Positions 1 to 56,200 of a stretch of DNA of 64,000 nt are shown here, one piece after another. The stretch is from Ylistrum balloti. Lineage: Eukaryota. The notes beneath the pieces were generated by a model. The model made no database searches. It was not told the DNA's origin and saw only the letters and a program-made list of their open reading frames with translations. Each line of letters begins with the position of its first letter. Position 1 is the first letter of the stretch. Where the stretch lies: the NCBI RefSeq assembly GCF_031769215.1, contig NW_026782152.1, forward strand, positions 372,001-436,000, written 5' to 3'. Made by a program: the position numbers and the translations under genes.

Positions 1-720
1 TCTGACCAGGATCCCTGGTACTTACAGTCTAGATATCTGACCAGGATTTCTGATACTTACAGTCTAGATATCTGACCAGGATTTCTGATACTTACATTCT
101 GGATATCTGACCAGGATTTCTGGTATTTACAGTCTAGATATCTGACCAGAATACCTGGTACTTAGTCTTGATATCTGACCAAGATTCCTGGTACTTACAG
201 TCTAGATATCTGACCAGGATTTCTGGTACTTACAGTCTAGATATCTGACCAGGATTTCTGGTACTTACAGTCTAGATATCTGACCAGGATTTCTGGTACT
301 TACAGTCTAGATACCTGACCAAGGTTCCTGGTACTTACAGTCTAGATATCTGACCAGGATCCCTGGTACTTACAGTCTAGATATCTGACCAGGATTTCTG
401 ATACTTACAGTCTAGATATCTGACCAGGATCCCTGGTATTGACATTCTAGATATCTGACCAGGATTTCTGATACTTACAGTCTAGATATCTGACCAAGAT
501 TCCTGGTACTTACAGTCTAGATATCTAACCTGGATTTCTGGTACTTACAGTCTAGATATCTGACCAGGATTTCTGGTACTTACAGTCTAGATATCTGACC
601 AGGATTTCTGGTACTTACAGTCTTGATATCTGACCAAGATTCCTGGTACTTACAGTCCAGGTGTCTGACCAGGATTTCTGATACTTACAGTCTAGGTATC
701 CCTGGTATTGACATTCTAAA
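1..720. repeat. 35-bp minisatellite, about 20 copies, truncated by the window edge (kindlin intron 5)
   Basis: Unit TCTGACCAGGATTTCTGGTACTTACAGTCTAGATA. Confidence 0.97.
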
Positions 721-2028
721 GGTGGATCCTGGATCTCTTACACACACATTTAACCAGGAACTATTTGTATGTTTTCTTTTACCTTCTAGTGACTCGGAGA
801 ACTGGCAAATACGAGCTTTATTATTCTAAAATAACTGGAAACACCACTTATACAATCTCCATCACACACAAGAAACCAGAAATTACTGTTATGTACAATC
901 TCCATCACACACTAGAAACCAGAAATAACTGTTATGGTCTAAACATTTCAGATGTTCCTATACCACAGATATAACACCAGATGTTTCATTTCTTGTTTAT
1001 GATCTTACAAACAATCATACAGAGCTGTCACCAATGACAAAATTACACTGTATTTCACTTTACCATACATTTGTATAACTAACGATCTAAGCCTAGAACA
1101 TGGGACAGATTTTCGTAACATTTGTAACAGACCAATACCTGGAACTAAAAAGAGCACATCAAAAAATTGTTTCAAGAAATAATGAGTTCCTGATCATGGA
1201 AAATGTTCCAAAACACCAACATCTTCAGCTCATGGTTTTGATATTCATAATATACAAGCCCCAATGTAGACCAGTTGATAAACCTTATCTTGATAATATT
1301 CATATCAACCCCCAGGAACACTGATGCAGTAAAGTAACCTCACATATGGGCCCATACTTCAAACAGCAGGTGAAGCACCTGCAAAATGTATGTCAGTCGA
1401 CCAGTTGAAAGACATTAAGTGGGTATGAATGAAGATTTTTCAGCAGTAAAACATTTTATCTTGATTCAGTCATGTTGGGTTGATAGTAATCCATTTACTA
1501 TAGTCCATTCATACAAAACAGCCCTTAGTAAATTAGTGATCAGCTTGGATCTATTTCAGCAAGTGATTCACTGCTTCTGTTTGACCTTCATTGACCTCTA
1601 AGTGTGGCTGCTGTAGGATGACCTTCACTGACCCCTACCAACCTTATCTACTATACCTAACACATCTATAATGCTGTTTCCCTTTATAGAACACTTGAGG
1701 ATGATCTTGGATTTTCGTGTTTAGTTGACCTAGTGTCAGCATGGTAACTTGAGAACTCTGGAGGCCCAGACTTGAAGACAAATAATCATTTGTTCTACAA
1801 CAGTCTGCTCTGACCAGACACCAGTCAAAGCTAGCATGTAATTTTACTTCTTTGGTCAAATATCAAAGAAAAAATTAGTATTAGTAGTAATAAGAAAAGG
1901 TTTTTTTAGGTTTTCATACATGCTGTTAAGACATTAAAAAATTGAAAGATTGAAGAGTGATAGGAGCTGGACAGTCAGATATGTATGCGAATTCCTAAAG
2001 AAACCTATTCAATTTTTGTTGTACTTAC

Positions 2029-29162: not shown

Positions 29163-29279
29163 CTATAGAAGTGAGAAATGATGTTTGAGCTGCTTTAGGA
29201 GTTCTTTGGAGTCAACATGATCAGGGAAGGCATCCACAGCTCGCTTGGCTGCATTGTAGCTGCTTTGTAAATCTCCCAT
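29163..29279 (-). CDS. TTC8: BBS8 last coding exon (38 aa + TAG)
   Basis: TATTTTTGTATTTACAG acceptor; MGDLQSSYNAAKRAVDAFPDHVDSKELLKQLKHHFSLL*. Confidence 0.95.
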   Translation of the reverse strand: MGDLQSSYNAAKRAVDAFPDHVDSKELLKQLKHHFSLL

Positions 29280-32200
29280 CTGTAAATACAAAAATACCAA
29301 AAATAAAATACCATACTCTATCAAAAACACAAAGACACCTAAAGCTGAAATAATATATTCAAGCCATCAGTTAAAATATATATACTGTACCTAATATAAT
29401 CAGTTCTTATTAAAGACCTCCGTCAAATGAATATTTACAAGAGTTTGTTTGTTTGGGTTTTTTTTTTTTTTTTTTGGCAAAAGATATAACACTTGATAAA
29501 ATGAATACAGCCCCTTGATATATTCAGACCTTTACAGAAACAGGACAAGCATCATAGGTTGACTCATAATCTGTAGATGAAGGTTTGAAGGAGTTGGAAA
29601 TCTAGATTATTAACCACTCTAGCCAACCTGAGTGTACTGAAGTGGTTTATCCCATATCAATCTGTCACATTTATAACTTCCCATGGCTAGTTTGTCATCC
29701 ACCCTTACAGGCCATGAATCAACCTTATTATTATTGATATGGCCTTTTGGTCATTGGTACAGCTGGCCATCCTTACAATGTCCAGTCATGTCTGACCTCT
29801 GAATCCTCCTCTGATCCTAATTGGCAGGACAAAGGCGTGACAATGCTGATGATTACAGCCACAGAAGTGTGTTTATCAATTGTCTATTAATGAAGTTACA
29901 AGGAGCAAGTGGCCAGCAACACGCACAGTGACATAAGCGATCAGTTCCTAGTCATTCCCAGGACAGGTGGCCTCTCTTTATCAACATATCTAAATTAAAC
30001 CAATAATTCAGTTCGTCTGGGAGACAGAAACACTGTTTGTGTCATAAGATGAATAATTTGTATTCCAGATGATTTGGAATGCAAATGTGTTAGATGATGA
30101 ATAGAATTTAGTTACAGTACATATATCTTTCCTGTGTTTACTTCATCTTGCTTTTACATGTAGTCCATTTCATTGTGTGTAAGCATGATTTTCATCCACA
30201 ATTCAACAGCAAAACACATCAGAAAGACTGATCAGCTCTCGTGACATGTCATATCCAAATCAATATGGAAAAAAAATCAAGGCTATGTTAAAAGTAATGA
30301 AAAACTTTCCCAACAAAAAACCTTCAAATACCAATAAAAGACTGCAACTAGATGTTCATGATATGTAGGCCAAACCTAAAATCTAATGCATACAGGCTGT
30401 ATTAGCATTGCAAATGGTTAGATTTGAATAATAAATATAGGCAGTATAACAGCACTTTCTGTCTGACTATTACTCTCTAAGATGGTTTGATATCAGAATG
30501 TATAAAGTGTCTGTTATAGTATAATCCAACTTAATAATATAAGTACATGCACATACTCTTTTATTAGCATCATGATCAAAACTCAGGACATAAAATGTGT
30601 TACAAAAACTTTATTTACATATAGCATCATTGTCTTAATTGGTATGTACAACTTCACAATAACTTGAAAAATGTTGATTTTCTAATCTTTCTCACATTTT
30701 ATATGAAGTGGAAACTCTTGCGAGATCTTTACTTCACTAGTCAAAATGTGAATTGTCATTTCCTTTATCGGTAAAGACAGTAAACTTCGCCTTGAGAAAA
30801 GATCATAACAACTGTTATTGTTCAATATTATGATTGACTACAATGGAGTGTAGATGTTGAACTCAACTACAAGGTAAAAGTGCTGTCATTACAATTTTAA
30901 TGCCAAAGCAAACAGGTCTTTAAATGTAAAAAGGATGGTCATACAAAGGTTTCTGTGGTCAGTCATGGCCTGGACAACAAGAATGCCCTCTGTCCAGTCA
31001 TAGGTAAAGGCCATTATGTCCTGTCACCAAACTAACAAGCTGTAACACCAATGATATTGACCCTATCATAGTATGGCTCATCACTTCTCTATAGACCTCA
31101 GAAAAGTGGTCATCTTAATGACAGTGGTCAGTATCACTAAAGTCCAATAAAATGTCAGTGTGGACAATCCACCAACCACAACAGCCTGGCTGAGTCCCTA
31201 TACAAATTCTTCAGTAAATGACCAGGGTCACTTTTCTATTATATATGACTGGTCATCTAATTACAACACTGGCTGTGACCTTAAGCAAGTCCTGGACCAG
31301 ATAACATCTGTGACCTTCTGGATGTCCACCAATAAAGTGATTATGTAGTAACCTCACCACAGAGCACCTGGTGGAGTGGAAAACCACAACAATACTTCTA
31401 TCCTGCTGGATATTTGTATAAGTACCAATCTTGGCCCTTCAATTTTTTTTTTTTTTCGATATATATGTAGTACTAGAGCCCAGATACAGAAACCATAACA
31501 ATGACAGTCATAGTGTTATAAATTCCAACCTTGTGGCAATATATGATACCACTAAAACTTTTAAAGCAGAATATCATCCTTTCATTCAAAACCAAATTGT
31601 GAATTTCATAATCTTATTTGCTCGTATATACTCCTTTTAATTTCAAATAAAATGTGAATCGAAATATTTAATTTGCATGTCATCCATAAATAGCATGAAT
31701 AATGAACACAGGAGGAATCAAATTTTACATTATAAAATGAAATTCTATAGAAATGAAAAAAAATATATACCAAAAACTTCAGGAAACTTAAACTTATACA
31801 GTTTTTCAGTGAATAGTTGTAATATTATGTGATGCAAATATAGAAGGAAGAGCATTCTTAGCGGTAATGGTTCATCCTGTCATTTACCACCACTTCAGCT
31901 AACTTAAAAACTTATAAATTTTATGGAGATTTCACTTATAGATAAAATACCTTCTGACTATGATCTTCTAATGACAGTATGTTATAAAGCAGGTATACAG
32001 TCAATGTTGAACATATAAATCACATCCAGACTGTGAGGTATAAACTACATGTCATTTACATAGATAAAAAGTTCTCATCAACATTACCATATCTATTCCA
32101 CCTACAAAGGGATTATAGTTATCCACTAATGTCAGGGTGTTCATTTCAAACCTCTTGGGTAGGTATGTTATTTCATCAAATATGAAATCCGAATATCTTA

Positions 32201-35200
32201 AAGCATCAAAAATAAAACTTCATACTTGTGAAAACTGCATCATAGCAATCATGTGCAGCAGACAGTGAAAAGTCTACCTCTCCAATACAGCTCGTAAACT
32301 ATCAAGTGTAAGCAATCCTGCTCTTTATTCATGCATTCATCACATGTTATTATAATATTTAATGACTTAACCATTTTTTCTTATATTTGTTGATGTCAGA
32401 CACAAACCATTTTATTTACGTAACAATAAACATGTATATCTCAGAAAAGACCAATAACAAGTAACATATGTAGTACTTATCAAATTATTTGATGTTTCTT
32501 GTAATATTTCCTGCTGATCTGACCAGTAACTTTTAATACTGGACTGAGAAGTAACATATAAGTTGTAATATTGATCTGATAATTAACAAGTAACTTTTGA
32601 TACTTACCTGACCACTAACTAGTAATTTATCATACTTACCTGACTATATTGCTATAAATAACTGTTAAGATACTTACCTGACCAGTAAAGTTTGATACTT
32701 ACCTGACCACTAACTAGTAATTTATCATACTTACCTGACTATATTGCTATAAATCACTATTAGATACTTACCTGACCAGTAAAGTTTGATACTTACCTGA
32801 CCACTAACTAGTAATTTATCATACTTACCTGACTATATTGCTATAAATAACTGTTAAGATACTTACCTGACCAGTAAAGTTTGATACTTACCTGACCACT
32901 AACTAGTAATTTATCATACTTACCTGACTATATTGCTATAAATCACTATTAGATACTTACCTGACCAGTAAAGTTTGATACTTACCTGACCACTAACTAG
33001 TAATTTATCATACTTACCTGACTATATTGCTATAAATAACTGTTAAGATACTTACCTGACCAGTAAAGTTTGATACTTACCTGACCACTAACTAGTAATT
33101 TATCATACTTACCTGACTATATTGCTATAAATCACTATTAGATACTTACCTGACCAGTAAAGTTTGATACTTACCTGACCACTAACTAGTAATTTATCAT
33201 ACTTACCTGACTATATTGCTATAAATAACTGTTAAGATACTTACCTGACCAGTAAAGTTTGATACTTACCTGACCACTAACTAGTAATTTATCATACTTA
33301 CCTGACTACATTGTTGTAAATCACTATTAGATACTTACCTGACCAGTAAAGTTTGATACTTACCTGACCACTAACTGATACTTACCTGACCACTAACTAG
33401 TAATTTATCATACTTACCTGACTATATTGCTATAAATAACTGTTAAGATACTTACCTGACCAGTAAAGTTTGATACTTACCTGACCACTAACTAGTAATT
33501 TATCATACTTACCTGACACCAGTAAAGTTTGATACTTACCTGACCACTAACTAGTAATTTATCATACTTACCTGACTATATTGCTATAAATAACTGTTAA
33601 GATACTTACCTGACCAGTAAAGTTTGATACTTACCTGACCACTAACTAGTAATTTATCATACTTACCTGACTATATTGCTATAAATAACTGTTAAGATAC
33701 TTACCTGACCAGTAAAGTTTGATACTTACCTGACCACTAACTAGTAATTTATCATACTTACCTGACTATATTGCTATAAATAACTGTTAAGATACTTACC
33801 TGACCAGTAAAGTTTGATACTTACCTGACCACTAACTAGTAATTTTTTATACTTACCTGACTATATTGTTGTAAATCACTATTAGATACTTACCTGACCA
33901 GTAAAGTTTGATACTTACCTGACCACTAACTAGTAATTTATTATACTTACCTGATCATCCTGCTATAAATAACTATTAGATACTTACCTGATCAGTAAAT
34001 TCTATACTTACCAATGACCCAAAACAAGTAACTTTTGCTGCGTGTACCTACATGACATGTTAGAGGTAACTTTGTTACTGATCTGACTTTTGATACCTAT
34101 ATGACAAGTAACAAGTAACATTTTATACTGACCTGATCAGCAAGTGCTGCCCAGTTATAATGTGCCTCATACATATGTGGAGTCAGGATATATGCTGCTT
34201 GGAAAAATGCCCTTGCCTGCAATGAAAAATAAGAAATTAATGTTTTCAATTTCAGGTCTACAAAAGTTTTATACACATTTTCATTTCAGTAATGATTACC
34301 ATAATTTTAGTATTCAAATACAGTACCTGCACCCATCTTTGCAGCCAAAAACCAAAAAATTTAAAAATCACGCCCCCCCCCCCCCCTAACAGCCTCATAA
34401 GCCATTACTACAGAGACATAGAGTGCCTCATCTCAGCCAATTTCAGTATACTTTTTAATATCCAGTTCTTCAGATACACATAACCGGACAACGTTCTGTA
34501 GTATTGTTTTTGTCGAAATCTATATCAATACAGCAAAAAAATTTTGACCAAGCTGGCATCAAGTCCTATTCAAGTGCCAGGGTAATTATTCAGCAATTTG
34601 TTTCCATATCCAAGACATATATACTCCAGCAAAACACATGAACATGTAGATTAAAGCAATATTTATGTTGTCATTTTGCCAAAGTAGGTATAACTACTAC
34701 AAAGTACATATGACCCAATGGGGAAGAGATTACAAGTATATAATGGCCATTTTTCTATACCAAACAAAATTCACACTGGCTGACCTAGGTTGATGTGTTT
34801 GATGGCATTATAGACACATTTTGATCTACTGTATTGGTAAACAGCCACACAAAAAGGCTGCACGATTACCAAGGCTCAAGAAATGACCAGTTTTTGTATC
34901 TATCATGTTACCCAGGCTCAAGTAGTTAAGGTAGAAGATATATATAGTTGTGACTAAATCGCATAGTTCAGTGACCTGGTGATGGAGATATGTACAGGGG
35001 TATGACTAGATCACACTGACAGACTCCTGTGATATGTTCATGGAGACATAAACAGGTATGACTAGACCATACTGACTCTAGTGCCAGTTGATGGAGACAC
35101 ATACAGAAGTGACTAGACAATACTGACTACTGACCAGTTGATGGAAACATAAACAGGTGTGACTAGACCACACTAACAGACTCAAGTGACCTGTTGATGT

Positions 35201-53200: not shown

Positions 53201-56200
53201 GGAACACGTGAACATTTACAATTAAAGAGTAAGACATTGTAGGAACACTTGAACATTTACAATTAAAGAGTAAGACATTGTAGGAACACTGATAAGTTTG
53301 ATTCTTTAATGTTTAAATTAATAAAATATCATTTCATCAGTTAACATCAGGAAAAAGTCTTTAATTTGTTTTACCCTGGAATAGTTTGGTTTGTTGATTA
53401 TATTTCATTGCTTTATGTTCTATCAACAGCCAGGGTTATTTAAGGGCACGCCAGGGTCTCAAACCTGTGGCACAGGGGTAGAGGGCTAGTGATAGAGAGA
53501 GACACCTTGATCGCTGAGCCACTATGGCCCCTTCCTGGAATAATAGCCCATAAAGTGGTTTTTTTTTGGTTACTTTAAGAGCATAAAGTATTCACTTCCA
53601 ATTTAGATTTTGTATCTCTCTCATTCAGATTGAGCATCAAAGGTTAATTGTGAAATTTGCCTTGAATGGATACAAAGTAAAATCCTGCGTTTATTCTCAT
53701 TTTTTTTTCAAATGCTCAAATTCAGAACAAAAACATAATTTTGATAAATGCAAGGTATTATTAAAATCGAATACAACTCATCCATAATGGTGAAAATTGT
53801 AAAAATTCACTTTAATTTTAATTTGAATATCTAATTACACACCAGTGATTTAAGCAAAGACCTTGCAGTCATGAGTACCTCTAGGTTATTGACCAACTTA
53901 ACCTAGCTCAAAAATAAGATATCTACACAATACAATTTCTAAACCATATTTATACTGTATATGACTCTACATTTCTATGTGCTGCAAAAAATACATTTTC
54001 ACAAAAAGATGTAACCTTACCAGGTCAAGGTGTCCTTTACGAAGTTCAAGTACTCCAAGGTTATTATAGGCTTCTGCATGGTCGTTGTTATTAGCTAAAG
54101 TTAATCTAAAACACTGGTAGGCCAAGGTCATATCTCCTATACCCTGTAAGCAGAAAATCACAAACAATGGTCAGTCAAGGTCATATCTCCTATACCCTGT
54201 AAACAGATAATCATAAACAATGGTAAGTCAAGGTCATATCTCCTACACACTGTAAATAGACAATCACAAACAATGGTAAGTCAAGGTCATATCTCCTATA
54301 CCCTGTAAACAGACAATCACAAACAATGGTAAGTCAAGGTCATATCTCCTAAACCCTGTAAATAGACAATCACAAACAATGGTAAGTCAAGGTCATATCT
54401 CCTACACACTGTAAATAGACAATCACAAACACCGGTAGACCAAGGTCATATCTCCTATACACTGTAAATAGACAATCACAAACAATGGTAAGCCAAGATC
54501 ATATCTCCTATACACTGTAAATAGACAATCACAAACAATGGTAAGTCAAGGTCATATCTCCTATACCCTGTAAAAAGAAAATCACAAACACTGGTAGGCC
54601 AAGGTCATATCTCCTATACACTGTAAATAGACAATCACAAACAATGGTAAGCCAAGATCATATCTCCTATACACTGTAAATAGACAATCACAAACAATGG
54701 TAAGCCAAGATCATATCTCCTATACACTGTAAATAGACAATCACAAACAATGGTAAGCCAAGATCATATCTCCTATACACTGTAAATAGACAATCACAAA
54801 CAATGGTAAGCCAAGATCATATCTCCTATACACTGTAAATAGACAATCACAAACAATGGTAAGTCAAGGTCATATCTCCTATACCCTGTAAAAAGAAAAT
54901 CACAAACAATGGTAAGTCAAGGTCATATCTCCTACACACTGTAAACAGACAATCACAAACAATGGTAAGTCAAGGTCATATCTCCTACACACTGTAAACA
55001 GACAATCACAAACAATGGTAAGTCAAGGTCATATCTCCTACACACTGTAAACAGACAATCACAAACAATGGTAAGTCAAGGTCATATCTTCTACACACTG
55101 TAAACAGACAATCACAAACAATGGTAAGTCAAGGTCATATCCCCTATACACTGTAAATAGATGAATAAAGATATAAAAACATGGGTAGGTGAAGGTCATG
55201 TCTCCTATGCACTATAAATAGAACATAAATACAGCAGGTCAAGGTCACAGCAAGACAACATAGAACATTGAGGACACATTTAAATGTATTTAATCAGAGC
55301 TCTGTACTGATTTAACACATGATATATTTGACTAGGCCAAACATTTTTCATTGAAATAGAAGTGTACAAAGGACAAGCAAGGCAAATCTTTTGTAGGCAA
55401 ATTTCACTGGTGGTTCTTAGCATGCCATGTCAACTACATAACACTGTTCAATAATTCACACATTATTTCTGTCTAAAAGTGACAGTAGTCTTACATTAGT
55501 ATCATTTAATGCTGATAATTGAATGATGATGGAGGATGCCTAGCTCCAGTGAGTGGTGATATATAACCAGTTTCAGAACGACAAGACATACACAATACAT
55601 CTACCACTAACTGCTGGAGGACATCATTATTCATGTGAACTGGAGAAATGAATGGATTCATCAGTACATAAACCACAAAAAATATTTCATAAACACTGAA
55701 ACATATAACATGTGTTCACTGATACAAAAACATCACATGTTTCCATGATAATTTTATTTCAAAACCTAAATCCCATCAACATCTAATAATAAAGAGGAAA
55801 ATATATAAAAATCTATATTTTTAAGTATGTATTGCTTTAAGTTAAGAAACATTTAAATAAATGATGTTTTAAAAATCAAATTAAGTGCTGTGTTTCGTAA
55901 ATTACAACTGAAATAAAGATGAAGTATTTTATTTTCACATAAACCTCTGACAAGGAAGATCTTCTGATGTATGTTGTTGTAGGCTCTATAAGGGCAGATA
56001 TGGTACACCACAAGGCGAAACCCTAGATAAAGCCATTTTTCTGTAAAACTAATTTACTGAATATGACACAATATTCTTTGTGATTTTGTGTATTTTCTCA
56101 TCTTTGTGATGAAAGTCTTTGATCAGGAAGAAAAAAAAGTTTACAGGTAAAGGTTGCTGAAATGACAGACTGGTGTTAATTCATGGCCTATCAGCTAGAT

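Follow-up and report, generated by a model that had tools for sequence, protein, structure and literature searches.

Tandem repeats of exon-intron boundaries have been given the name 'mirages' in the amphioxus gene Adh3 (PMC3087553, PMC3902484). In amphioxus they recur in globin (BflGb6/9), TnC and PGBD5 genes and involve 5' and 3' boundaries alike; their centres are homogenised, their edges are divergent, and splicing is undisturbed (PMC3087553, PMC3902484). The best-studied case is the 37-bp VNTR in intron 7 of human F7, whose pseudo-donors are functional yet silent, the most upstream site being preferred (PMC1557585). When pseudo-sites of perfect consensus were engineered into F7 minigenes, behind an authentic donor weaker than themselves, 70-90% of transcripts used them (PMC1557585). 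No publication on tandem U1 or decoy minisatellites came up in our search of the literature.

Here we analyse a window of 64,000 nucleotides, which is the whole stretch of DNA under study, from the scallop Ylistrum balloti. Its minus strand carries exons of BBS8/TTC8, a conserved cilia gene, and the terminal intron of this gene holds an array of perfect 5' splice sites. Our main finding is that this array is probably a donor-type junction minisatellite, that is, a mirage, most likely tolerated as a by-product of a very repeat-rich genome. The assignment to donor-type mirages follows from the fact that the first unit of the decayed minisatellite is the real exon-intron junction. A by-product is favoured over a landing pad for U1 because three bivalve lineages lack the array and because the donor motif, at the edges, decays like the rest of the unit.

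Host gene of the array

A 505-aa TTC8 protein (P0038), reached via a search from the last BBS8 exon, matched four colinear minus-strand exons when aligned to the 64-kb window with tblastn. The penultimate exon also matched BBS8 in solved BBSome structures (chains 6xt9_H and 6vbu_8). When P0038 was used to search for a full-length mollusc BBS8, only vertebrates appeared among the 120 matches listed. The features of the gene used below are as follows, a slash within a sequence marking the splice junction:

59067-58876, 54143-54024, 34216-34133 and 29279-29166, minus strand: BBS8 exons (tblastn with P0038)
34133..34216, minus strand: penultimate BBS8 coding exon, 84 nt, encoding ARAFFQAAYILTPHMYEAHYNWAALADQ
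34125..34135, minus strand: genuine donor GAT CAG/GTCAGTAT, with exon end at 34133 and intron start at 34132
29166..29279, minus strand: last BBS8 exon, coding portion of 38 aa

The acceptor of the last exon reads tttacag/ATGGGA (boundary 29280/29279, tttacag at 29280-29286), and the terminal intron is 4853 nt long with 32.5% G+C.

Array structure

The 11-mer ATACTTACCTG is present exactly 45 times between 32600 and 33990, always on the plus strand, where 0.07 copies are expected (100 dinucleotide shuffles), and has zero matches in the rest of the 64-kb window. If one mismatch is allowed, the sole extra match nearby is the genuine donor itself (ATACTGACCTG, 34125-34135). On the minus strand, which is the sense strand of BBS8, each copy reads CAG/GTAAGTAT. 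The array thus read lies in the terminal intron, its first donor starting at 33987, 145 nt downstream of the genuine one, and its young core is framed on either side by older, decayed units:

33991..34132, minus strand: decayed upstream units, which connect the core with the genuine donor and include TTG/GTAAGTAT and the old unit CAG/ATCAGTAA
32600..33990, minus strand: young array core, 45 exact CAG/GTAAGTAT at a spacing of 22-38 nt
32430..32599 (about), minus strand: decayed downstream units CAG/ATCAATAT, CAG/TCCAGTAT and CAG/ATCAGCAG, with C at +3 and GT lost

Site TTG/GTAAGTAT of the decayed upstream stretch, at 34004-34014, is a 46th strong site.

Tandem Repeats Finder reported one array at 32589-34012, with periods of 95 and 189, 15.2 copies and 88% matches. 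On the gene strand, three subunit types can be distinguished, C (37/38 nt), B (32 nt) and A (25 nt), which invariably follow each other in the order C-B-A and form a higher-order repeat of 94/95 nt, in about 15 copies with three donors each. Eleven of these copies are full-length: five are mutually identical, three others are mutually identical, and the mean pairwise identity of higher-order copies is 96%. Moreover, a 154-nt block is duplicated within the array at 100% identity (33376-33671), and units of 22 nt and 27 nt, at 33366-33388 and 33515-33542, are recombinants between subunit types. The recombinant units and the perfect duplication are footprints of recent, ongoing unequal exchange and, indirectly, may hint at length instability between alleles. 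Since higher-order copies are identical or nearly so and the 154-nt duplication is perfect, the 45 sites are best read as three founder sites amplified about 15-fold, very recently.

The 5' end of U1 snRNA is AUACUUACCUG. The array is no U1 gene or pseudogene, since Rfam gave no RNA family match anywhere in the window; moreover, the plus strand beyond the 11-mer is unlike U1 when read by eye.

Origin of the repeat

The genuine exon-intron junction is the first unit of the repeat: of its 32 positions, 27 agree with the unit consensus, and the decayed units that run into the core follow on from it without interruption. In edge copies we find CCTGATCA and AACAAGTAACTTTTGATACT, flanks that they share with the genuine junction, and CTGATCAG is common to these copies and to the exon end, where it amounts to 8 nt of conserved coding sequence. 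The exonic portion of the unit is small, 8 nt in the edge copies and 4-5 nt in the core. The other bivalves compared here conserve the exon end, which is coding, as GCnGATCAG; from this conservation we conclude that the junction seeded the repeat, and not the reverse.

The same comparison gives a polarity to the third intron position. The genuine donor GTCAGTAT and four old units (ATCAGTAA, ATCAATAT, TCCAGTAT and ATCAGCAG) have C at +3, while the amplified units have A, so that C is the ancestral state and the A of the perfect consensus the derived one. In these four old units GT is itself lost, with AT or TC in its place, and the earlier generation of the array was therefore one of dead donors. 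Edge units are 67-76% identical to the consensus, and the centre is homogeneous.

The locus has the structural features by which mirages are recognized. It is a head-to-tail tandem repeat of minisatellite size within a gene; its unit combines exon bases (only 4-8 nt), a splice signal and intron bases, with the authentic junction in terminal position; and it has a concerted centre, where 8 of the 11 full-length copies fall into two identical classes, between boundaries that are not homogenised.

It is very improbable that the array is instead a satellite or mobile-element array without relation to the junction and similar to it only by coincidence, or that its copy number is an assembly artefact. 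The window is indeed full of unrelated minisatellites, and near-identical repeats assemble poorly, so the count of 45 may vary between haplotypes or assemblies. Chance resemblance is, however, at odds with the 27/32 fit of a junction that continues into decayed units, and with the conserved coding nucleotides found in edge copies. As for an artefact, the window contains no N, and the internal variants of the array, including the 22- and 27-nt recombinants, are those of a real array with a history of its own. A mobile-element origin in particular was considered unlikely, as the flanks of the array have no terminal inverted repeats and the unit has no second copy in the window.

Donor strength and predicted transcripts

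The derived sites are stronger than the donor from which they descend. In duplexes with the U1 5' end, array sites pair at 11 of 11 positions (-14.0 kcal/mol), versus 10 of 11 for the genuine donor, which has an internal mismatch at +3 (-9.9 kcal/mol). Read-through past the genuine donor (...ALADQVSIKCYLLLVI) would add VSIKCYLLLVI and then stop:

34099-34097, minus strand: TAG, in frame on skipping of the genuine donor, with 109 nt left to the nearest array donor

Whichever array donor is used, this stop is retained more than 100 nt before the last junction, and transcripts that use a decoy are thus probably degraded.

These results agree with the anatomical part of an earlier note on this DNA. 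It had counted 45 copies in 32600-33990, placed the genuine donor CAG/GTCAGTAT at 145 nt from them and ranked the array donors above it; the exact count, the junction positions (34133/34132 and 33987) and the U1 pairing bear it out. Its derivation of the array from the exon-donor junction, based on donor flanks shared by edge copies, also stands, as does its prediction of VSIKCYLLLVI followed by an in-frame TAG.

The same note had proposed that the sites could act as a U1 sink or pad that tunes BBS8. According to such a reading, 45 selected sites recruit U1 snRNP to the terminal intron, where BBS8 output would be set by non-productive splicing and decay, or where the AT-rich intron would be shielded from premature polyadenylation (telescripting). 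Several observations speak for it: pairing over 11 nt is perfect, the core is invariant across divergent subunits and includes a change that strengthens it, a premature stop is predicted on decoy use, and the array is closely followed by AATAAA or ATTAAA hexamers (32537-32329). F7 provides an example of perfect pseudo-sites in competition with an upstream donor weaker than they are, and telescripting is established in human, mouse and Drosophila (PMC5499120). On the other hand, a spacing of 22-38 nt probably precludes simultaneous occupancy by U1, and the amplification, with its identical 95-nt copies, is very young and would have left little time for selection.

The sites could also be imagined as a recursive-splicing ladder, in which the exon joins an array AG, regenerates a stronger donor and is then spliced to the last exon. 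Recursive splicing is described for long introns; this one is only 4.9 kb, and 45 redundant sites are unnecessary for such a step. The AG/GTAAGT core does fit the juxtaposition of acceptor and donor at ratchet points (PMC8605326) and, since CAG terminates the exon, the first step would restore a perfect CAG/GTAAGTAT. However, the 20 nt that precede array AGs are 40-55% pyrimidine, versus 70-75% at the three real BBS8 acceptors of the window, so that the combination of a pyrimidine tract and an AG next to a donor, which characterizes ratchet points, is not found. On account of these weak tracts recursive splicing was rejected as the main reading, and we regard the AG/GT recursive steps suggested in the earlier note as highly unlikely.

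Comparison with other bivalves

Contigs of relatives were found via last-exon open reading frames (ORFs) and represent three bivalve lineages (L001-L006; L009; L010 with L007). At the protein level, the penultimate exon has 86% identity in these lineages. In the three lineages the exon end GATCAG is kept, the orthologous donors are GTACGT, GTATGT and GTATGT, and the orthologous terminal introns measure 1485, 540 and about 8100 nt. None of these introns contains a GTAAGTAT array or a junction-derived repeat; at the distance of these bivalves, intron sequence is non-alignable. The comparison of orthologous introns and donors, by which the earlier note had proposed to judge a role of the array, hence goes against that role.

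Searches aimed at closer material gave little. A 59-aa ORF spanning the junction, used as a query for close relatives or the same species, found nothing; the search for close relatives with the last-exon ORF retrieved only distant bivalves and one snail; and an exact scan of metagenome contigs for the array unit found nothing.

Two side observations concern the same intron elsewhere. In L010 (3120-4937) and L007 (174-1993), the orthologous terminal intron carries a 155-nt satellite unrelated to the junction; both contigs come from one sample, have near-identical last exons, and may be haplotigs or a duplication. In P0007 (153 aa, from a mollusc-like source), a single ORF joins the penultimate exon to the last one across a terminal intron that is short and open, and the orthologous intron of that species is only about 200 nt long.

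Decay and spread of the donor motif

If U1 binding were selected, the motif would be expected to be conserved in relatives or to be kept preferentially over its flanks, and neither is seen in the three bivalve lineages or within the locus. Conservation in eight decayed units at the edges is 76% for the 11-nt core and 67% for the rest of the unit (Fisher p = 0.15), which suggests that, within this locus, the donor motif decays like its surroundings. For the earlier note, decay of the 11-mer in relatives at the rate of the rest of the unit was one mark of a neutral duplication, and this is the pattern obtained here within the locus.

The core itself behaves differently. All three subunit types have the same 13-nt stretch, GTCAG/GTAAGTAT, and outside it they are only about 46% alike. 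As the state of this core is derived, its spread must have come after the divergence of the subunits. Identity of the core amid divergent subunits is not predicted by simple neutral decay; it calls for selection or for a conversion that stays within the core, and is the sole feature that a tolerated by-product leaves partly unexplained.

Other minisatellites of the window

Minisatellites make up 19.7% of the window, in 13 arrays with units of 27-61 nt and up to 72 copies. The 19.8-kb BBS8 intron that separates 54024 from 34216 contains six of the 13, none of which is junction-like on inspection. This neighbouring intron is devoid of a pad of the kind envisaged for U1, a further point against that function. 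A second junction array, of the acceptor type, is nevertheless present in the gene:

54109..55161, minus strand: acceptor-type junction array in BBS8, about 20 copies of a 53-nt unit

Its unit consists of an intron end, an acceptor and an exon start (..tttacag/.GGAGATATGACCTTG.., that is GIGDMTL), and it adjoins the real exon at 54143. Two of the 13 arrays of the window therefore span a junction, versus 0.05-0.2 expected if arrays were randomly seeded, a comparison based on a small sample.

A 35-nt array on the minus strand at 1-700 runs off the start of the window and has CT/GTAAGTAC in every unit; upstream of it, at 700-800 (minus strand), a sequence ..cactagaag/gtaaaag.. is loosely similar to the unit. 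This array may be another donor-derived one, belonging to a neighbouring gene.

Both the junction-array excess and the identity of the core bear on a broader idea, namely that the perfect-donor core spread non-randomly. Either U1 binding would have been selected, for NMD-coupled control of BBSome-subunit dosage or for protection of the intron, or splice-site sequences would trigger the DNA events that seed and homogenise arrays, possibly transcription- or U1-linked breakage repaired by templated duplication. Such DNA events, if real, would explain both the excess (2/13) and the limitation of identity to 13 nt, but we consider the idea as a whole unlikely. As to a selected U1 pad or poison-splice regulator, its absence from three other bivalve lineages, the decay of old copies, the dead donors of the earlier wave and the occurrence of a second junction array in the same gene make the proposal of the earlier note decidedly unlikely. 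The fallback of that note, a tolerated by-product, is the best fit.

Discussion

The history that we favour, of a tolerated junction minisatellite, would run as follows. A segment of about 32 nt, running from ~8 nt before the exon end across the 5' splice site to ~22 nt into the intron, would have been duplicated in tandem into the terminal intron. Slippage and unequal exchange, the usual routes of minisatellite turnover, would then have acted on its copies, and an older generation of units would have decayed, mostly losing GT, to remain as the present flanks of the array. One variant would have gained A at +3, acquiring perfect U1 complementarity, and taken over the core of three adjacent, otherwise divergent subunits. 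We infer that it spread by short-tract conversion confined to the stretch of best homology, a self-reinforcing and neutral process. Very recently, the 95-nt triplet would have been amplified about 15-fold, to give 3 x 15 = 45 sites. The array would have no selected function. It would persist if the real donor, 84 nt from the acceptor of its exon, is chosen often enough, and if decoy transcripts, which carry a premature stop, are for the most part degraded.

As a single locus, this case adds little, since junction-derived minisatellites have already been described in amphioxus and human F7. Its value is that of a natural experiment on the choice of 5' splice sites, with 45 perfect decoys beyond a weaker real donor. 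If the real donor proves to be the only one used in scallop RNA, then position and exon definition would outweigh affinity for U1; should decoys be used, a young repeat taxes BBS8 output. The apparent excess of junction-seeded arrays (2/13 in the window) is a second point of interest. What seems unusual here is that the decoys are derived, by a change from C to A at +3, that they are stronger than the real donor, and that divergent subunits have their core in common.

The locus can finally be compared with four known systems. Like the sites involved in telescripting, the scallop sites are intronic, complementary to U1 and presumably do not serve as used donors (PMC5499120); in telescripting these are dispersed cryptic sites, whereas here they form a tandem array derived from a junction. 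With the ratchet points of Drosophila and vertebrates the array has AG/GTAAGT in common (PMC8605326), but it differs from them by the lack of a pyrimidine tract, by its 45 tandem copies 22-38 nt apart and by the shortness of its intron.

The F7 repeat is closer. Its pseudo-sites, about 5-8 in number, repeat the sequence of a mediocre authentic donor and adjoin it directly, whereas the scallop array has 45 perfectly U1-complementary sites, with A instead of C at +3, stronger than the authentic donor and located 145 nt downstream of it, past three decayed units; it is therefore no donor VNTR of the F7 type, in which identical pseudo-donors directly follow the real one. Since engineered perfect sites were used in 70-90% of F7 transcripts, the scallop arrangement is predicted to compete with the real donor, and by this analogy its decoys may be harmful.

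Closest of all are the amphioxus mirages. As in these, the scallop repeat spans an exon-intron boundary and multiplies a splice signal inside an intron, and BBS8 has both a donor and an acceptor array, each with decayed edges and a homogeneous centre. The differences are the bivalve host, the tiny exonic share, the higher-order structure of three subunits, and copies that are stronger donors than the authentic one; normal splicing has been shown for the amphioxus genes, whereas the scallop gene is described at the level of DNA.
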